Sequence record: KT919973.1
Strand: one strand, 5' to 3'
DNA length: 64,000 nucleotides
Part shown: one piece after another, positions 2,314-34,015 of the stretch
Layout: every line of letters starts with the position of its first letter
How positions within the stretch are numbered: the stretch's first letter is position 1
The notes under the pieces: model-generated
Told to the model about the DNA's origin: nothing
Databases searched by the model: none
The model's input: only the letters and a program-made list of their open reading frames with translations
Translations under genes and position numbers: made by a program

Positions 2314-3337
2314 AGTGGCAAAAATTTACAGATCAACAATCACAACAGAGTATCGAGTTAATAACTTGATGAACTTCTACGAAAACGTAGGTGATGACGA
2401 CGACAAGAACACAATTTACCTTATGTTCGGTCGTAACGAGCCTTGGTCAGACCGCGAAGATGAAATAAACTTCGCGCCACCTTACCCAAACGATAGCCCA
2501 GATGGGAAAGCAGACGTTTGGGCGCGTGCGCTAGGTCTGATTAAGATTCCAAAATCACAGCTTCGCCCTGTTATTCCTCGTAAGGACTGGGGCGACCCTG
2601 ACCTAAACGATTCACTTCGTTTCACATTTGGCGATATCGTGACAGTTAATACGATGTCAATCAACAGTCACCCGAGCGCATTGAACGGCTATATGGTTTA
2701 TCGATGTGTCGATATTCCAGAGACTGACCCGAATAACACAAACATTCGTGGTACATGTTCAATATCAACAGTCACAAATAAAAATGATTGTGTAGCAGTT
2801 GGGGGTGAATGGAATGCACCGTCGTCACCCGGTAACCAAGAGAATATCCCTCATGGTACAGGGAATGCGATTGAAACAGGTGACGGTTACGTATGGGAAT
2901 ATCTATACACTATCCCGCCAAATGAAGTCTTAACGAACGTGACAAAAGAATACATCGTTTGTCCGTTCCCTAACGACATCATCGAAAATCGAGTTGCGTG
3001 GGGTCTTGATCAGAATATCGTATTCAACGAGAACTACGACGAAACTATTTTCAACGTAGGTGCAGTTCAGTTACGATTCCGAGCTAAATTAGCAGGCTCT
3101 GACTTTATTCACTTATTCGGTCCCGGGAATAACGGGTATCGTCAGATTTCACTTGTTCAGAACCCATTATTGATTCGTCAAGAAGGTGATACCGAAGACA
3201 CGAAAGCGACTGAAGTTAGATACGACCCGCATGAGATACAAGCAGGAACAGGTCAAATTATCTACATGGAAAACCGTCAGCCGATTCGTAAAACATTAGA
3301 CCAGGTAGAAGAATTCAATCTGATCTACAACTTCTAA
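2306..3337 (+). CDS. 8: Baseplate wedge subunit gp8
   Basis: 343 aa, GTG start overlapping gp7; T4 gp8 motifs IYLMFGRNEPW, PRKDWGD, GDGYVWEYLYTIPP, GYRQISL, IYMENRQPI. Confidence 0.9.
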   Translation: MNKVAKIYRSTITTEYRVNNLMNFYENVGDDDDKNTIYLMFGRNEPWSDREDEINFAPPYPNDSPDGKADVWARALGLIKIPKSQLRPVIPRKDWGDPDLNDSLRFTFGDIVTVNTMSINSHPSALNGYMVYRCVDIPETDPNNTNIRGTCSISTVTNKNDCVAVGGEWNAPSSPGNQENIPHGTGNAIETGDGYVWEYLYTIPPNEVLTNVTKEYIVCPFPNDIIENRVAWGLDQNIVFNENYDETIFNVGAVQLRFRAKLAGSDFIHLFGPGNNGYRQISLVQNPLLIRQEGDTEDTKATEVRYDPHEIQAGTGQIIYMENRQPIRKTLDQVEEFNLIYNF

Positions 3338-3358
3338 TAAATACAGTAAATAACTCAT

Positions 3359-22988: not shown

Positions 22989-23630
22989 ATGGAATTACAA
23001 CTCTTAATTGAAGACTGGGGTTTATCTAGCGGTTGCGCTGATAGCTTCGGTGAAAAGCCTCTTGTTGAAGCGAAAATGCCCACGGAAAAGGGCGGTGACT
23101 TGTACATCGAAGGTATTTTCATGCAATCGAATGTCGTAAACCGTAATGGTCGTCGATACCCGAAAAAAGTCATGGAAAATGCTGTATCTAAATACATGAA
23201 AGAACAAGTCAACACGAATCAAGCGTTGGGCGAGCTTAATCACCCAAGTCGTTCAAACGTTGACCCCGCTGAAGCTGCGATTCGAATTACTGAGTTGTGG
23301 TGGGACGGCGATAACGTAATGGGTAAAGCTATCGTACTAAATACACCGAAGGGACAAATAGTTCGAGGTCTGATCGAAGGTGGTTGGGTACCGGGCGTGA
23401 GTTCAAGAGGTCTTGGTTCAGTTAAGCAAGTTGACGGCATCAACGAAGTGCAAGATTTCCGTCTTACAGTAGGCGTTGATGTAGTGTGGGGTCCTAGTGC
23501 ACCTGCTGCTTACGTTAAACCAGTAACTGAGTCAAATGAAGCTGCTAAGTCAGTAAAAACAGAAGAAATTACAGAAAGTAATGACGCTGAATTTGCGAAA
23601 CTAGCGGAAACGTTAAAAACTCTCTTATAA
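22989..23630 (+). CDS. 21: Prohead protease gp21
   Basis: LYIEGIFMQ..VVNRNGRRYP, ALGELNHP, GVSSRGLGS, DVVWGPSAP. Confidence 0.95.
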   Translation: MELQLLIEDWGLSSGCADSFGEKPLVEAKMPTEKGGDLYIEGIFMQSNVVNRNGRRYPKKVMENAVSKYMKEQVNTNQALGELNHPSRSNVDPAEAAIRITELWWDGDNVMGKAIVLNTPKGQIVRGLIEGGWVPGVSSRGLGSVKQVDGINEVQDFRLTVGVDVVWGPSAPAAYVKPVTESNEAAKSVKTEEITESNDAEFAKLAETLKTLL

Positions 23631-27305: not shown

Positions 27306-27351
27306 ACTGTACAAGACTAAATAATATAAGTCAACCTGTCTAAATATAAAC
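27306..27351. promoter_or_regulatory. Back-to-back promoters: sigma70-type leftward for cca, late-type rightward for inh
   Basis: Minus strand TTGACT-N17-TACAGT (27334..27306) and GTTTAT-N17-TATATT (27351..27323); plus strand ACTAAATA 27316-23 and TCTAAATA 27339-46. Confidence 0.55.
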
Positions 27352-27376: not shown

Positions 27377-27874
27377 ATGAGTCAATTGAAAAAACACGCA
27401 GAGTCGTTAACTAAAGAAAAACTAGACGAGTTTGCAAAAGAATATTACGGCATCGAACTTGACCGTCGTAAATCAAAAGGCGCAATGGCTAAGAAGCTTG
27501 TAGAAGAAGCTGAAGGTAAAACGCCATTGAAACAACTACCATGGGAAGAACTTCTTGTAGAGACGAAAGATGAAACCAAAGAAATTAAAGAAATTTCTGA
27601 AGTGAAAACTGAAGTCGTTGATAAAGTAGAACTACCAATCGATGAATCATTTGAACCAATGCCATTGCCATTCCGTCGTGGTCGTGAATTTTTCATGACT
27701 GCTTCTGATAGCGCGGTTACATCTGCGGAAGCTATTATCGCAGGGGATGGTTCGCTTGATGATGTACTTGCATCAGATCTTCGCGTAGTTAAATCAATCT
27801 TGCATTATGTCGAGAAAGACGGCAAGGTGCTAGTGCGTGAAACTCGCAATAGTCAATTCATCACAATTAAATAG
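27377..27874 (+). CDS. inh: Inhibitor of prohead protease Inh
   Basis: C-terminus ILHYVEKDGKVLVRETRNSQFITIK matches T4 Inh C-terminus by recall; LDEFAKEYYGIEL N-terminus. Confidence 0.85.
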   Translation: MSQLKKHAESLTKEKLDEFAKEYYGIELDRRKSKGAMAKKLVEEAEGKTPLKQLPWEELLVETKDETKEIKEISEVKTEVVDKVELPIDESFEPMPLPFRRGREFFMTASDSAVTSAEAIIAGDGSLDDVLASDLRVVKSILHYVEKDGKVLVRETRNSQFITIK

Positions 27875-27882
27875 GAACTGAA

Positions 27883-28221
27883 ATGACAACACCAATCTAT
27901 ACTGATATGAACCTTGCAGTCGAACTTGATGATGCGACTGTAGCAGCGGCAGACGCTGCGAAAAGTGGGTATGATGATGTAACAACGTCTGTGCTTAATC
28001 ACTCAGGCGAATCTTACATTATCGTAGACAAGCAAACTTATGAAGAGCTTAAAGCTGCGATTGAAACTGCTAGTCCGTTGAGTTCAATTACTGGTCTGTC
28101 TCAAGAATGCGTTGACATTCTTGCAGGCGCGGTTGATTCAACAACTACACTTTGCAGAGAACATACCAATAGCCGATTCTTCCGAATCGCGTGGACTGTT
28201 ACTACACCTGCTCCCGAATAA
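27883..28221 (+). CDS. Hypothetical protein co-transcribed with inh
   Basis: 112 aa ORF, AGGA SD, followed by a terminator. Confidence 0.6.
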   Translation: MTTPIYTDMNLAVELDDATVAAADAAKSGYDDVTTSVLNHSGESYIIVDKQTYEELKAAIETASPLSSITGLSQECVDILAGAVDSTTTLCREHTNSRFFRIAWTVTTPAPE

Positions 28222-28277: not shown

Positions 28278-29450
28278 CTAAGCGACGAACGCTACACGCT
28301 GTACGATTGTCTGTTTTTCGTCGCGAAACTCTTCGTGCGCTTTTACAGTCGCTTTTACAGTTACTGAAACGCCTTTCTCAATCGCTTCGCCGTCGTTATC
28401 ACGTAGACGCTTTGAACCAAACCACACGATTAGATTGTTTTGTTCATCGCGAAACTTGTGAATGAACGTGTCACCGTAGTAGCCTTCAGAAACGATAACC
28501 GCTTCAAGAGTGACATTAAAGTTCTCGCGTTTTTTGATAGTACCGACGTACTCAGATTCTGGCAAATCTGCTTCGCGTTTAGCTAGAATCACGCGCTCTT
28601 TTGCTTTGTTGAAAGCTAAGATAGCCGCTGCAATGTAACCAGTTTGTTTGTACTCGATGAATGGTGCAGAACAAGACGCGATGACGTTATGCATGAAATC
28701 GTTAGTCGCTTCTTGAGTTGCAACCCATTCTAAAATCTCTTTTGCTTGCTCTTCACAATTGTCGTAATCATATTCATCTAACATTGCATCGCGTTCGGTA
28801 CGAAGTGCAGGTGTACCTGCATTAATCATGTCAAGAACCCATTGACGAGTCACACCGCCACCGTGATAACAACCTTTGTGTTCAACATACATAGCAGCCC
28901 AAGCAAGAATCTGAAGCGCGTTATATGAAATTTTACGAGAACCACCACCCCAAGACTCTTCATCACCGAAATCAGCGATTGCAGTGTAGAACGTCGCTAG
29001 TGAGTCGATAGATTTAGTCGGCAAGTAGTATTTCAAGCATGAACCACCGACGCGCATTTCTTCTTTAGTCTCTTCATTCTGAATGACGTAAGTTACATTG
29101 CGTTGACGATTAGAGTTACAGTGATCGCATGTTGTGTCGCCTAGAAGATGACGGTGATTTGTTTCGTTGTTTGAACGAATAAGATTTGTCGCGTGGTCAA
29201 GTTGAGTCAAGAAAGACCAACCTTTAGTTGACGGGTATTCACCGAGAATAGTAACATCAACGTAGTATTCACGATGCTTTTGGTGATTGATAATAATGAC
29301 TTTTGAGTACACTTCACCGAACTCAAATGTAATTTCAGCAACACCGAGACGTTTTGCAATCTTGTTAGTAGATGCAATACGCGCTTCAAACTCGCTCATG
29401 TAGATTGATTTGATTGTGTAAGTGTTTTCGAATTTGTTTAGTGAAGTCAT
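28278..29450 (-). CDS. Hypothetical protein with Cys cluster (CDHC...C) and C-terminal OB-fold-like region
   Basis: 390 aa; own early-type promoter; C-terminal YVG..K.R...WFGS...ATVKAHEEF..EKQT pattern. Confidence 0.6.
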   Translation of the reverse strand: MTSLNKFENTYTIKSIYMSEFEARIASTNKIAKRLGVAEITFEFGEVYSKVIIINHQKHREYYVDVTILGEYPSTKGWSFLTQLDHATNLIRSNNETNHRHLLGDTTCDHCNSNRQRNVTYVIQNEETKEEMRVGGSCLKYYLPTKSIDSLATFYTAIADFGDEESWGGGSRKISYNALQILAWAAMYVEHKGCYHGGGVTRQWVLDMINAGTPALRTERDAMLDEYDYDNCEEQAKEILEWVATQEATNDFMHNVIASCSAPFIEYKQTGYIAAAILAFNKAKERVILAKREADLPESEYVGTIKKRENFNVTLEAVIVSEGYYGDTFIHKFRDEQNNLIVWFGSKRLRDNDGEAIEKGVSVTVKATVKAHEEFRDEKQTIVQRVAFVA

Positions 29451-29492: not shown

Positions 29493-29521
29493 ATATTACG
29501 GCTTTTTGGTGTTGTCGTCAA
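29493..29521 (-). promoter_or_regulatory. Early sigma70-type promoter
   Basis: ggTTGACG-N17-TAATAT; leader ends GAGAGAACATT-ATG. Confidence 0.75.
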
Positions 29522-29615
29522 CCAATAGATACAAAAAAAGCGCAAAAATGCGCTTTTTAATTATCAAGCAGGTACGAAATCTGCTGAATTCATGAAAATC
29601 TTGAAATGTTTTCAT
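29496..29615 (-). pseudogene. Stub ORF: capsid-targeting-like leader with no evident payload
   Basis: GAGAG SD then MKTFQDFHE (T4 IP leader MKTYQEFIAE-like); the remaining 30 codons run through a terminator and the next promoter. Confidence 0.55.
29533..29558 (-). terminator. Terminator ending the 31139-29623 late operon
   Basis: AAAAAGCGCA-TTTT-TGCGCTTTTTTT on the minus strand. Confidence 0.75.
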
Positions 29616-29622
29616 TGCTCTC

Positions 29623-30543
29623 TTATTTTCTAATGAAATATGTTTTAGTCGAGACTTTCCCTTCGACCGTTTTATATGTGTAATTCGGTAATGTATCAGC
29701 ATATCGTTTTACTAAACGATTGTATAGTTTTATTCTCGAATCACTGTCGTTTTTTATATCTCGCTCTGCACTGAAATAAATTGTTTCTGGCTCTCGCTCG
29801 TCTATAAATTCACGCATACCGCTCATTACTGTCGCAAACACACCATACATATTGCCTCGACCTGTTGCGCTGTAAGTATAATCACCCGAACTGTTCATAC
29901 CTAAGAACACAAGTTCCCATGCATCGTTTTGTTCTTGATACTGTATTGCAATCGCGTATTCGTCCCCGTTTACCGTGAACGTACCACCCCAACTGTGAAT
30001 TCTCTTCTCAACCCAGTGTATTTTAGATGGTCGGTCAAATGCCTCAGTCAAGTTAACTGAAGATAACCATTCACGCCATGTCTTCTTATTACCGATCTTG
30101 GCAAATGGGATATCGTCATGATCTAGCCACTGAGCCGAGCGGTCATATGACTGAGAAGTATCAAACCCTCTATAATCATCACCAACCCACAACCATTTGT
30201 GATGCCATATTTGGTTTACTTGACGTGGTTTGGAAACAACACCGTCTCTATAAGTAATCATCATACCCGCGGCTGGTTCTTGTACAGTATCAAATTCAAC
30301 TGAATCGTAGAAGGCAACTCCACCTTTCTTGTAGTCAATTCGTACTACATTCGGAGTAAATTGTGGGTTTGCAATTGATACTTGAGTACGAGCATCAGCA
30401 ACCATTTGCTTGAACTCATCTGGTATATAGTCAATGTGAACATATAATGAACCGCCAATGTCTTTACCCACGCCCCACTTGCTGCGTTTTACTGCACTAC
30501 CTTTTCGAGTTTTCAATGTAGCGCGTTCAAAAATTATGCTCAT
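29623..30543 (-). CDS. Two-domain putative internal head protein; N-domain resembles the accessory domain of phosphorothioation-associated methyltransferases
   Basis: Late operon; MSIIFE leader and internal NLTE/A site; motif order VGK...LYVH / NVVRI / F...P / IWHHK / IG.K..W..L. Confidence 0.5.
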   Translation of the reverse strand: MSIIFERATLKTRKGSAVKRSKWGVGKDIGGSLYVHIDYIPDEFKQMVADARTQVSIANPQFTPNVVRIDYKKGGVAFYDSVEFDTVQEPAAGMMITYRDGVVSKPRQVNQIWHHKWLWVGDDYRGFDTSQSYDRSAQWLDHDDIPFAKIGNKKTWREWLSSVNLTEAFDRPSKIHWVEKRIHSWGGTFTVNGDEYAIAIQYQEQNDAWELVFLGMNSSGDYTYSATGRGNMYGVFATVMSGMREFIDEREPETIYFSAERDIKNDSDSRIKLYNRLVKRYADTLPNYTYKTVEGKVSTKTYFIRK

Positions 30544-30545
30544 TA

Positions 30546-31139
30546 TTACCTCGTTGCTGCGTTTGTAATATTGCGAATCATACGAATTGCGTATTCAGTA
30601 TCGCCAGTCATAGCCGATGACGCTGCTTTATCGACGTAAAATGTGCTATCTTCAATCATGTTCAAGTGATGGTAAATCTCACGAAAATCATGACGGTCGT
30701 ATTCTTTCACATTAAAACGAAACGCACCTGCCTTCTTATCTTCGTCATGAACACGCTTGTATTCATCTACGACACGAATCATTTCGGTTGCGTATTTCTT
30801 CATTTCCATGTTATCAAGCTTTAAACGCTTTGCAGCTTTCATTACTTCGTCACGAGGACGTTCAAGCTCGATTACGTCTTTAAGAACATTCAGACTGTGA
30901 ATTGTGTTCACTGCTGCACGCTCCATTCTTAGCTTATGGTCTTCTAGTGACTTATTGTGCTTTCTAAGTTCACCCGATGCTGTCGCACTCGCGATCAAAC
31001 CTGCAAACACACCCCAGAAGCCACCTTTGCGCTGCATACGCTTTTTAACTTCACCTTTCGAACCCGATGTTGCTGCTTTAAATTGAGCCCATCTACCGGT
31101 TTGTTTAGCTTTGTCCATTTCTGTTAAAAATTCTATCAT
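30546..31139 (-). CDS. Putative internal head protein (helical, one hydrophobic segment)
   Basis: First gene after late promoter; N-terminus MIEFLTE resembles the EFIAE capsid-targeting signal; GGFWGVFAGLIA segment. Confidence 0.55.
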   Translation of the reverse strand: MIEFLTEMDKAKQTGRWAQFKAATSGSKGEVKKRMQRKGGFWGVFAGLIASATASGELRKHNKSLEDHKLRMERAAVNTIHSLNVLKDVIELERPRDEVMKAAKRLKLDNMEMKKYATEMIRVVDEYKRVHDEDKKAGAFRFNVKEYDRHDFREIYHHLNMIEDSTFYVDKAASSAMTGDTEYAIRMIRNITNAATR

Positions 31140-31161
31140 TGTTAACCCCTTTGTTTACTAT

Positions 31162-31169
31162 TATTTAGA
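31162..31169 (-). promoter_or_regulatory. Late promoter variant
   Basis: TCTAAATA on the minus strand, 22 nt before the ATG at 31139, right after a terminator. Confidence 0.7.
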
Positions 31170-31177
31170 CGCAAACG

Positions 31178-31205
31178 AAAAAAGGGCGACCGAAGTCACC
31201 CTTTT
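31178..31205 (-). terminator. Rho-independent terminator
   Basis: AAAAGGGTGAC-TTCG-GTCGCCCTTTTTT on the minus strand. Confidence 0.88.
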
Positions 31206-31217
31206 AAATTGGTTAAT

Positions 31218-31844
31218 TTAACCGTATACTGATTTGATATTGTCGAAAAACGCAGTTGAACCGTGTAGTTTCGCTACAACATACGATGCATTCTGACGAA
31301 CAAGTTGTTTAACGTTCAGTTCTTTCAACTGCTCTTTTGACAAGTTCGCGCTATGTACAAGCGTAAGAATAGAACGTGCGTGATCTGACAATGCAAGCGT
31401 TGAAATATAACGAGCTTGCTGTTTCGGTTCAAGCTTTTTAAATGCATCAACCGCTTGTGGACCCGCAACAGCTACTGCACGCCCCAGACCAAGATTGAGA
31501 ACACGTGTCAATAGAGATTCCATCCCTAATACAGGCTTACGTGGCGACTCGCGTTTTGGCATGAGTACTTCTAATTTACCGTCACCTTTCAACGTGTATA
31601 CAGGAATCTCGGTGTGACCGAACGTTTCGAATCGAGTGACCATGATTTCAGGTGCATTCTGAACGTTAGCTTGAACACGACGACGAAGACGCTCATCATA
31701 TTCACCGCCATTAAGTGAATATACAATCTCTGCAACTGTCAAGTCACGCTTTTCAAGCAATTGAATTACTGCTTTGCGGAAGTTACGACGCTTAGGTGAC
31801 TCGTTAGTTGCAAGTGCTTTACGTACGATGTCTAAATCTTTCAT
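31218..31844 (-). CDS. Hypothetical protein with N-terminal winged-HTH-like segment
   Basis: RKAVIQLLEKRDLTVAEIVYSL pattern; early operon; GAGAG SD. Confidence 0.5.
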   Translation of the reverse strand: MKDLDIVRKALATNESPKRRNFRKAVIQLLEKRDLTVAEIVYSLNGGEYDERLRRRVQANVQNAPEIMVTRFETFGHTEIPVYTLKGDGKLEVLMPKRESPRKPVLGMESLLTRVLNLGLGRAVAVAGPQAVDAFKKLEPKQQARYISTLALSDHARSILTLVHSANLSKEQLKELNVKQLVRQNASYVVAKLHGSTAFFDNIKSVYG

Positions 31845-31859
31845 AATATATTTCTCTCA

Positions 31860-32126
31860 TTAAATTACGATTGGCTCTTGAATAGCCATGAATGTCTTGC
31901 CAGTGAATTCTTGATATGCTTCATGAAAGCTGTCAAGTTCATCGTCAACAATTATTTTTTCACCAGTACCAAATGAATATAAAATACTGTCATATTTACC
32001 TGTTGCAGTATTAAACATCGGTTCAGTTGTGAATTTAACGCCACACGGTGTATAAAACTCCCTAGGTTTTTCAACAGGAACTTGTACAGCGTTATGTTCA
32101 GCAAAAGCTGTTTCGAGTTTGTTCAT
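31860..32126 (-). CDS. Hypothetical protein (88 aa)
   Basis: First gene after the early promoter; GAGAG SD. Confidence 0.65.
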   Translation of the reverse strand: MNKLETAFAEHNAVQVPVEKPREFYTPCGVKFTTEPMFNTATGKYDSILYSFGTGEKIIVDDELDSFHEAYQEFTGKTFMAIQEPIVI

Positions 32127-32163
32127 ATTCTGCTCTCTTAGTTATGTTGTGTTAACGATGACT

Positions 32164-32192
32164 ATAATAAGCAAAAACATTTGAGTTGTCAA
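32164..32192 (-). promoter_or_regulatory. Early sigma70-type promoter
   Basis: TTGACA-N17-TATTAT on the minus strand. Confidence 0.8.
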
Positions 32193-32681
32193 CTACTTTC
32201 TTCGCCATCTCTCAAGTTTTTCATCATATTCGCTATGCTTCCATAAGTCGAATACGATTGTACCTCTCTGAAACCACCAGACCAATGAAATAGTATCATT
32301 TAACTTAGGGTCTTTTGGGTTTTTTCCTGAATAAAATTCACTACTAGGGTGTGAGTGATAAATCGACTTTTTAACTGCGAACTTATACCCACCTTCAGGT
32401 TTACCGACTTCTTCTGGCGGGTATAAGTTACCTAGATACGCAACTTGATATACAGTGTTCTTGAATACGATTCGACTTGAATCAATATTGAAGAGCAAGT
32501 TCTGGTATTGAGCAGCATTCGCAGCAATCTTCCACGGGTGCTTCGGTTTCGTTTCTAGTAACTCATCGATTTTCGGCTCAGGGATTAGTTTGGCTAGGTT
32601 ATGATTACCCCACCCCTCTTCAAGTGATAAACTCAGTTCGATACCGTAAAGCGTGTTTTCATATTCATTAAATCGTAACAT
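32193..32681 (-). CDS. HigB/RelE-superfamily-like protein with N-terminal capsid-targeting-like propeptide
   Basis: KLIPEPKIDELLETKPKH, LGNLYP and WWFQRGTIVFDLWKHSEYDEK segments parallel HigB-family N-terminal, LxxxFP and THxEYD motifs; preceded by MLRFNEY...LEE. Confidence 0.55.
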   Translation of the reverse strand: MLRFNEYENTLYGIELSLSLEEGWGNHNLAKLIPEPKIDELLETKPKHPWKIAANAAQYQNLLFNIDSSRIVFKNTVYQVAYLGNLYPPEEVGKPEGGYKFAVKKSIYHSHPSSEFYSGKNPKDPKLNDTISLVWWFQRGTIVFDLWKHSEYDEKLERWRRK

Positions 32682-32684
32682 AAA

Positions 32685-33197
32685 TTACCTCAGATAAATG
32701 AAGCTGTTCGAAAGACGGTCGTGAACTAAAAGATGACCATTTCGCTTAACCCAATATTCAATCGTCTTCAATTCGTGAGAGTCGCGTCGACCTATATTCC
32801 AATCATGAATCACATCATGCGCAACTGGCTGATATAGCTCATCACCACGGCGATAAGTAGGCATCCATTTAGGCTTGAATTCGTCCTTGATTACTAATGT
32901 TACGTTTTCATCACCTAAAGGGGCATTAGCAGAAACACCTTCTAATTCTTTCTTAACGTCGTCTGAAAGCTCTTTGACTACAATCGCGTCCGATTCATCG
33001 ACTGATTCACAGCGCGTCTCAGACTCGATTACAGAGCATTCTAGTGGTAGTTCTTTAACCTCGCGTAGCTCGTGTGTGAATAACTCGTCGATCATCTTGC
33101 TTTTAGTCAGCGATTTATCAAGTTCGATGTCGTAGTACTCTTTTGCAAATTCTGCAACTACGCGCTTGGTTTGTTTCTTTAGATATTCTTTAATCAT
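32685..33197 (-). CDS. Inh paralogue
   Basis: EFAKEYYDIELDK shared with inh (EFAKEYYGIELDR); C-terminus IEYWVKRNGHLLVHDRLSNSFIYLR aligns with inh C-terminus. Confidence 0.75.
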   Translation of the reverse strand: MIKEYLKKQTKRVVAEFAKEYYDIELDKSLTKSKMIDELFTHELREVKELPLECSVIESETRCESVDESDAIVVKELSDDVKKELEGVSANAPLGDENVTLVIKDEFKPKWMPTYRRGDELYQPVAHDVIHDWNIGRRDSHELKTIEYWVKRNGHLLVHDRLSNSFIYLR

Positions 33198-33206
33198 AGT
33201 TTTACC

Positions 33207-33416
33207 TTAGCATTCAATTGTTACCCACACATTTCGATTTAAATCGAAAAATGTAAGTTCATTATCTGCACCGTTTTCATTTTTACGTTGTTCTTCTCGA
33301 TTGCAATCAAGATGTGGTAGATAATGCTTGCATAAAGTCGCGTGATATTTCTTGCCTTTATGCTCAAACTTAAAGCAACCATCTTTCATCTTGTAAAACA
33401 TTTCGTCTCTTGTCAT
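33207..33416 (-). CDS. Small hypothetical protein, possibly SH3/WYL_2 (DUF2693)-like
   Basis: MTRDEM..K..G, ATL...LP, FFDLNRNVW pattern; first gene after a late promoter. Confidence 0.45.
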   Translation of the reverse strand: MTRDEMFYKMKDGCFKFEHKGKKYHATLCKHYLPHLDCNREEQRKNENGADNELTFFDLNRNVWVTIEC

Positions 33417-33429
33417 GAATTTAGACCTC

Positions 33430-33455
33430 TATAAATACAGTTATACATATTTAGA
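33430..33455. promoter_or_regulatory. Divergent late promoters
   Basis: TATAAATA (+) 33430-37 and TCTAAATA (-) 33455-48. Confidence 0.75.
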
Positions 33456-33478: not shown

Positions 33479-34015
33479 ATGAGACATTTTGTGTATGAAA
33501 TACGACATACAAAAACAAATCGAATATACGTCGGTATACACTCATGTGATTGTGAATTCTTAGATACAAATTATTTCGGTTCTGGGATACATATCAAAAA
33601 TGCAATACGCAAGCATGGGAAGAGTGAATTCACTAGACGTGTGATAGCAGAATTTGACAACCGAGAAGACGCAGCAAATTTAGAGGCTGAGATCGTCACG
33701 CGAGAGTTTTGTGAACGTGATGATAGTTACAACATCAGAACTGGTGGCGATACGTGTTTTGAACATAGCAGCAAAACACGTGAGGTGATGTCCAAATCAC
33801 AATCAGGTGATAAGAATCACTTCTACGGGAAGACACACACTGCCGAAGCAAAGAATAAAATAGGCAAAAAGAATTCGATTAAATTAAAAGGGCGCGAGTT
33901 AGAAGCAAATAAATTGACCGCAACATGCCCACATTGTAATAAAACCGCACAACTCGCCAATATGAAGCGTTGGCATTTTGATAACTGCAAACACAGAGAA
34001 ATTAATGATGAGTGA
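33479..34015 (+). mobile_element. Free-standing Seg-type GIY-YIG homing endonuclease
   Basis: FVYEI...IYVGIH, YFGSG, E and YNI.TGG catalytic motifs; NUMOD3-like repeats; CPHC...RWHFDNC tail; same position as T4 segE, before uvsW. Confidence 0.88.

Follow-up and report, generated by a model that had tools for sequence, protein, structure and literature searches.

The cargo loaded into the capsid by the T4-type route includes the restriction inhibitor IPI* and Alt, a modifier of host RNA polymerase, and to our knowledge the loading of capsids by way of leaders has been elucidated in no phages other than T4 and its nearest relatives. In the T-even internal proteins (T4 IPI, IPII and IPIII; T2 ip4, ip5 and ip7) a short N-terminal leader ends in [LI]-x-E, while Alt is a head-packaged and injected ADP-ribosyltransferase. 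A further group of head-packaged effectors, the polyvalent and MuF-fused proteins, is marked by enzymatic domains, exchangeable modules and delivery together with the DNA (Iyer et al. 2017, PMC5512222; PMC9503650). We analysed a window of 64,000 nucleotides that matches bases 124001-188000 of Vibrio phage phi-ST2 (KT919973.1), a KVP40-like Schizotequatrovirus, at 100% identity, and in it a block of seven leftward genes, h240 to h234, flanked by uvsW and by a run of head genes (gp20 to gp23, then cca, inh and a small open reading frame, ORF). Gene names follow the GenBank numbers, coordinates are those of the window (record coordinate minus 124000) unless given for the record, and the genes, domains and signals of the block are all on the minus strand. 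Three proteins of this block, h238, h235 and h234, are probably new cargo of a T4-style capsid-loading system, and unusual cargo in being conserved and enzyme-like; that they are made late and loaded into the virion by way of a T4-type leader is a reading to which we assign a probability of roughly 0.55.

The particle proteome of a relative bears on this reading. A 2025 paper on Schizotequatroviruses reported 94 proteins, identified by tandem mass spectrometry in two replicates, from the particles of phage 6E35.1a (PMC12028318), and the data used here, from its Tables S4 and S8, are counts only. Orthologues of h234 (VP6E351A_0018, = P0006), h235 (VP6E351A_0019, = P0049) and h238 (VP6E351A_0022) were detected with spectral counts of 9 and 14, 21 and 34, and 17 and 14, respectively, and those of h233, h236, h237, h239 and h240 (VP6E351A_0017, 0020, 0021, 0023 and 0024) were not (PMC12028318). 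Orthology was taken from the named matches P0006 and P0049 for h234 and h235, and from a shared PHROG together with synteny for h238. A pattern of exactly these three among the eight genes h233-h240 would arise by chance 1 time in 56. Packaging into the virion, as a sequence-only reading of this DNA had proposed, was in this respect supported by published data on particles precipitated with polyethylene glycol (PEG). The paper remarks that some anti-defence proteins are present in particles and tags the h234 orthologue 'Defense?', and otherwise does not discuss h234, h235 or h238 (PMC12028318).

The three detected proteins share a short N-terminal leader ending in [LI]-x-E, as do the T-even internal proteins. 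The N-termini of T2 ip4, ip5 and ip7, read from record MH751506.1, were used as comparators to rank 386 ORF N-termini across the whole phi-ST2 genome, and ranks 1-6 were occupied by six ORFs with a near-identical leader, for example MKTFDEFITE in the tRNA cluster and MKQFGEFLTE in phiST2_0312, several of which have a late-type box just upstream. By sequence, phi-ST2 clearly uses this type of leader. Like the T-even phages it has the prohead core genes gp67, gp68, gp21 and gp22. All three of the six ORFs that have a PHROG in the table of the proteome paper were detected, the orthologues of phiST2_0312, _0344 and _0023 reaching mean counts of 55, 83.5 and 9.5 in 6E35.1a particles (PMC12028318); for the other three no orthologue was traced. 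Of all N-termini in the genome, that of an 80-codon ORF in the tRNA cluster, outside the window (record 101694-101936, minus strand), has the best leader of T-even type. This ORF has a late-like box upstream, and GenBank annotates its last 46 codons only (phiST2_0182), so that the leader is cut off; the T-even ip genes likewise adjoin a tRNA cluster (T2 record MH751506.1).

In the same ranking the h238 N-terminus stood 11th and that of h234 77th, and h235 was 8th only when a truncation of four residues was allowed and 104th without the shift, so the block leaders would be degenerate relatives of the T-even-type leader at best. An [LI]-x-E that ends within the first seven residues occurs in 26 of the 386 ORFs (6.7%), three of the seven block genes among them, a modest enrichment. 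Apart from leader and particle presence, the block differs from the T-even internal proteins in several respects: its leaders are degenerate or truncated, its genes are core and not hypervariable, they lie beside inh and uvsW under late promoters and not in the tRNA and lysozyme regions, and their cargo is larger and enzyme-like, with cleavage and injection predicted here.

The four N-termini that had been singled out as leaders read as stated, as did the L-N-E followed by A in gp23, which lies at residues 60-63. Three of the four, those of h238, h235 and h234, belong to real conserved genes, while the fourth, at 29615, opens an ORF of 39 codons (29496-29615, minus strand) that we rejected as a functional conserved gene: it runs across the terminator of the block and the promoter of h233, KVP40 has one interruption in the frame, and nt-1, phi-pp2 and QD01 have lost the stretch by deletion. 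Its first seven residues, MKTFQDF, are close to the T-even leader, a likeness for which we roughly estimate a chance expectation of ~0.003 per genome, and the ORF may be what is left, at the 5' end, of an internal-protein gene that was lost.

For h238 (32193-32681; 162 residues) the predicted structure consists of a disordered leader and a compact alpha/beta domain. The leader spans residues 1-21 (32619-32681) and ends in L-E-E; in a model with an overall predicted local distance difference test score (pLDDT) of 74, residues 1-20 scored 35 and the fold began directly after L-E-E21. The [LI]-x-E motif lies at the same alignment column in nine of nine homologues, and one remote homologue begins MKTFSEF. 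A library-wide profile search gave three related clusters only, which precluded a deeper alignment. Searched with Foldseek, the model found its best folds in the PDB in Cami1 (8phj, 8phb), a nuclease of the RelE family, and the Helicobacter pylori toxin 4ltt, with a probability of 0.89-0.90, expectation values (E) of 0.035-0.24 and a TM-score of 0.60 normalised to 4ltt, all weak matches. The protein thus weakly resembles, at the level of the model, the RelE/HigB/ParE superfamily of mRNA interferases, from which it differs in having only these E values, no sequence-profile match (Pfam, NCBIfam, PADLOC and PDB-sequence searches gave none of RelE/HigB type) and no partner of an antitoxin family. 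The earlier description of one block protein as HigB-like is thus weakly supported by fold and not by sequence profiles. The label 'JAB domain', carried by the nt-1 orthologue in UniRef, was rejected, as no JAB structure was among the fold matches and Pfam gave no JAB/MPN match.

The N-terminus of h235 (30546-31139; 197 residues) reads MIEFLTE (31119-31139), a heptapeptide that nine orthologues, with an overall identity of 66-100%, keep without change. Its residues 3-7 agree in full with residues 6-10 in the leader of the particle-associated phiST2_0312. The protein has one hydrophobic stretch, at about residues 40-56, and is confined to the KVP40-like phages of this comparison.

The largest of the three, h234 (29623-30543; 306 residues), is a two-domain fusion. 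Its N-domain (30058-30543; residues 1-162), the leader of which ends in I-F-E (30526-30543), is highly conserved, with many invariant charged and aromatic residues, and fold searches with it gave no clear match. It occurs also as a stand-alone protein of ~170 residues in phage 1.081.O and on many metagenomic contigs, and fused to other domains, including within a viral protein of 1232 residues. Among 24 homologues, which include stand-alone ~170-residue proteins from unrelated contigs and one fusion protein of 524 residues, an [LI]-x-E ends 3-7 residues before the first conserved block in 23, while the leaders that precede it vary in length and sequence. One stand-alone homologue is encoded at 2811-3353 of a Logan contig from SRR31017047, amid runs of small paralogous genes; a gene for a multisubunit RNA polymerase beta-prime-like protein lies on the same contig, a context which argues that the N-domain extends beyond T4-like phages.

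The C-domain of h234 (29623-30042; residues 168-306) has a predicted GNAT-like fold and resembles DUF6934, with a sub-threshold score of 24.2 bits against a cut-off of 27; no acetyltransferase family profile of Pfam matched it. Its model (pLDDT 84.6) had RimL, SpeG and other GNAT structures as top PDB matches, with probabilities of 0.97-1.0 and E of only 4.5e-3 to 2e-2. About five paralogues of this domain are encoded by phi-ST2 (four proteins and a fifth, overlapping reading frame), and all of them, like the C-domain itself, are weak DUF6934 matches. They lie outside the window, at record 199417-200304, 226953-228404 and 234886-237141: one stands beside alt, one of 483 residues has a late box, and three are in tandem. 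Two proteins of PHROG 6387, the family of three of the paralogues, were found in 6E35.1a particles (VP6E351A_0094 and _0154), with counts of 38.5 and 44, as was VP6E351A_0134, the PHROG-13195 orthologue of the 483-residue paralogue (PMC12028318).

Compared with predicted viral structures, the C-domain model matched the Alt proteins of several T4-like phages, and also proteins named for a zeta-toxin domain, a deaminase domain and ParB/sulfiredoxin. In the Alt of phi-ST2 itself residues 5-121, on the N-terminal side of the ADP-ribosyltransferase domain, weakly match DUF6934, and the part of Alt that is matched is presumably this N-terminal region, the fold search giving no coordinates. Alt is abundant in 6E35.1a particles (122/233) (PMC12028318). 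In contrast to Alt, h234 has no ADP-ribosyltransferase domain, and there is no significant similarity between the two by sequence profile; profiles of the GNAT-like family, an enlarged one included, failed to reach Alt. In polyvalent and MuF-fused effectors GNAT domains stand next to ADP-ribosyltransferase domains (PMC5512222; PMC9503650), and the viral fold matches of the h234 model to zeta-toxin-, deaminase- and ParB/sulfiredoxin-named proteins are a further likeness to that group. The block proteins differ from it in being small, with one or two domains and no fusion to MuF or portal, and a cleavable leader would do the targeting.

Between the two domains of h234 lies an internal N-L-T-E (30043-30054), followed by A, which the sequence-only reading had already placed at the domain junction. 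The junction is real, and it marks the breakpoint of a swap: N-domain identity of phi-ST2 is 97% to KVP40 and 93% to nt-1, while the C-domain is 27% and 76% identical, respectively, and is wholly absent in 1.081.O. In the alignment the N-terminal leaders of the paralogues themselves end at the N-L-T-E column. It is plausible from these sequences that the internal N-L-T-E is a cut site, and a domain swap placed precisely at a cut motif hints at a mode of cargo exchange.

Both late units of the block are preceded by the box TCTAAATA, P1 at 33448-33455, 32 nucleotides upstream of the h240 start codon, and P2 at 31162-31169, 22 nucleotides upstream of h235, in the positions where late-type boxes had been claimed. 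The general motif T[AC]TAAATA has 16 copies in the window against 5.7 expected, and none of 100 shuffles gave 16; most copies lie 16-50 nucleotides upstream of the late genes wac, gp18, gp19, gp22, gp23, inh and gp34, and all three minus-strand copies are intergenic and point at minus-strand genes. In six phages (phi-ST2, KVP40, nt-1, phi-pp2, QD01 and 1.081.O) P1 stands at -39/-40 and P2 at -30 to -34 from the start codons, with a DNA identity of ~77% or less among the phages compared. Since the motif is enriched, precedes late genes and keeps its position despite DNA divergence, both boxes are credible late promoters as judged by pattern and conservation. We found no transcriptome of any KVP40-like phage in the literature, nor any fractionation or infection data that bear on head location and ejection with the DNA. 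An intrinsic terminator at 31180-31205 ends the first transcription unit and another, at 29535-29558, which is kept in relatives, ends the second.

The scheme of two leftward late operons needs one amendment, for the first unit holds an internal sigma-70-like promoter before h237 (32164-32192; TTGACA, 17 nucleotides, TATTAT), which has 11 of 12 consensus matches and is also present in nt-1 by a strict pattern. Because of this promoter h237 and h236 may be expressed early too. The edge of the late block is formed by the sigma-70-like promoter of h233 (29493-29521), which is kept in five phages.

We propose that the block comprises two late transcription units conserved among KVP40-like phages, from which h238, h235 and h234 would be made alongside the head proteins and incorporated into the virion. 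The short unstructured leader would bring each protein into the prohead core, where the gp21-type prohead protease (22989-23630) would cut after [LI]-x-E: h238 after L-E-E21, h235 after L-T-E7 and h234 after I-F-E6. A second cut in h234, after N-L-T-E167, is probable and would separate the two domains from each other. The cargo, comprising the enzyme-like domain and the Alt-type GNAT-like module of h234, the RelE/HigB-like-fold domain of h238 and a protein with a hydrophobic stretch, h235, would accompany the DNA into the next cell. Left unpackaged would be h239 and h240, and also h237 and h236 with their separate promoter. On this proposal a distant marine branch of the T4 family carries the same type of leader, the leader-bearing proteins are those in particles, and the cargo includes conserved enzyme-like proteins of no known function. 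For the broad-host-range Vibrio phages that aquaculture uses, it would narrow the candidates for first-minute effectors to a short, testable list, and it suggests a rule by which packaged proteins might be picked out in T4-like genomes, namely a late promoter, a disordered leader and [LI]-x-E.

Several points weigh against this proposal. We infer head location, cleavage, injection and function, any anti-defence role included, for h234, h235 and h238. Cleavage is predicted from the motif, and in h234 the constant distance between [LI]-x-E and the conserved core could have a structural reason. The leaders of h234 and, without the shift, of h235 fall short of a full T-even-type leader at the ranks given above. 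In the models the C-domain is linked to Alt only at the level of fold and of a sub-threshold Pfam match. The three proteins could lie in the tail as well as in the head, and the proteome is that of a relative with 46-70% identity and not of phi-ST2; the phi-pp2 genome paper has no proteome in it. The particles were PEG-precipitated and not gradient-purified, and non-structural enzymes were found at similar counts (dUTPase 7/10, DNA helicase 7/19, NAMPT 16/23) (PMC12028318).

Conservation is a further such point. The block genes are core in 18 Schizotequatroviruses, and the ratio of non-synonymous to synonymous substitution rates (dN/dS) of h234, h235 and h238 is 0.13 or less (values of 0.13, 0.096 and ~0 for the three) (PMC12028318). 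The genes are syntenic in six phages of at least two genera, the exceptions being h236, which is missing from nt-1 and 1.081.O, and the C-domain of h234. With all its genes core, under purifying selection and in the same order in six phages, the block as a whole is not the exchangeable payload array that it had been taken for, and the comparison across KVP40-like genomes that had been suggested as a check showed variation in h236 and a swapped or absent C-domain in h234 within an otherwise conserved array. Core status and purifying selection set these genes apart from T-even internal proteins and would suit structural proteins equally.

The likeliest of the alternatives, though we hold it to be unlikely, is that the three proteins are not internal cargo. 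They would instead be common structural or assembly parts of the particle, for example of the head decoration, neck, baseplate or tail accessories, and the [LI]-x-E near their N-termini would play no role in processing. Late promoters, core status and low dN/dS are all typical of structural genes, an [LI]-x-E lies within ten residues of the start in 10.6% of ORFs, and the authors of the proteome class neighbouring small virion proteins as tail morphogenesis (PMC12028318). The folds, however, resemble enzymes or toxins and not structural repeats; the h234 N-domain recurs fused to other domains, in one case inside the 1232-residue viral protein; the leaders are disordered, and remote homologues show their relation to the T-even type; and the C-domain module appears, from the models, to be common to Alt, a known head-packaged enzyme.

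It is quite improbable that the three are instead unpackaged proteins of the cytoplasm or membrane, abundant late in infection, which came down together with the particles. Precipitation was by PEG, non-structural enzymes and spanins are listed at 2-23 counts, and the hydrophobic stretch of h235 could bind membrane debris, yet carry-over of this kind fits poorly with the selectivity of detection, which fell on exactly the three leader proteins and missed five neighbours, two of which, h239 and h240, share the late transcript of h238. Leader-bearing proteins from elsewhere in the genome were likewise detected.

The gene directly before h238 bears on the remaining possibilities. By sequence h239 (32685-33197; 170 residues) is a clear paralogue of Inh, which in T4 is the inhibitor of the gp21 prohead protease and a minor head protein: it matched phi-ST2 Inh (27377-27874) over its full length at 28% identity (E 1e-13), and in profile searches it matched PHROG 8608, which the two share, at 8e-69 and, weakly, the PHROG of T4 Inh (1051) at 1.4e-3. 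It is a second, diverged copy adjoining uvsW, and neither copy was detected in 6E35.1a particles. The statement that none of the block genes is a known structural gene was therefore wrong.

With this paralogue in view a bolder version of the leader proposal can be framed, which we consider highly improbable. In it h238 would be an active RelE/HigB-like, ribosome-dependent RNA-cutting enzyme, kept in check in the producing cell, perhaps by the Inh paralogue encoded directly before it. It would enter the head by means of its leader, be cut at L-E-E21 and reach the next cell with the DNA. The GNAT-like module that h234 and its paralogues have in common with Alt would serve generally as an adaptor for capsid loading, with new cargo attached to it, or swapped, at a protease-cut junction. 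If this were true, host translation would be struck before any phage gene is read.

Least probable of all is that the block works late inside the infected cell, for example in superinfection exclusion or as an h239-h238 module of toxin-antitoxin type, with virion association incidental: the 'Defense?' tag on the h234 orthologue (PMC12028318), the weak RelE/HigB-type fold matches of h238 and the small gene that precedes it by just 3 nucleotides would suit such a role, but no defence or toxin-antitoxin profile matched the block genes, the presumed partner h239 is a paralogue of a head-assembly protein, and strict core conservation in lytic phages together with late promoters suits a role in the virion better.

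For the other genes little beyond family membership was obtained. The PHROGs of all seven block genes are phage-only, and for the eight proteins searches of Pfam, NCBIfam, PADLOC and PDB sequences gave no confident function beyond Inh and DUF6934. A block protein related to a phosphorothioate-system domain had been suggested, but no such domain was matched in Pfam, NCBIfam, PADLOC or the PDB, and none of the block proteins matched Dnd/Ssp phosphorothioate components in PADLOC, Pfam or NCBIfam. The first gene, h240 (33207-33416; 69 residues), belongs to PHROG 18485; its relatives favour the start at 33416, where the GenBank record has 33401. Genes h237 (31860-32126; 88 residues) and h236 (31218-31844; 208 residues) belong to PHROGs 16599 and 16689. 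Beyond the terminator of the second unit the next gene is h233 (28278-29450, minus strand; 390 residues, PHROG 2319), the most conserved neighbour, with 92% identity to KVP40 and a cysteine-rich middle region.

On the other side of the block the frame of uvsW is open from a TTG at 33978, where the GenBank record has 34008. The ~530 base pairs between the block and uvsW, exclusive to phi-ST2 and XZ1, hold an unannotated ORF of 178 residues (33479-34015, plus strand) that matches GIY-YIG (seg-like) homing endonucleases (PADLOC HEase 1.9e-17, PHROG 314 1.4e-39, TIGR01453 2.9e-12) and has its own late-type box, TATAAATA, at 33430-33437, back to back with P1. Directly downstream of inh, under a late box at 27339, lies an ORF of 112 residues (27883-28221, plus strand; PHROG 13922), the orthologue of which was found in 6E35.1a particles, from which Inh was missing, at 24/40 (PMC12028318).

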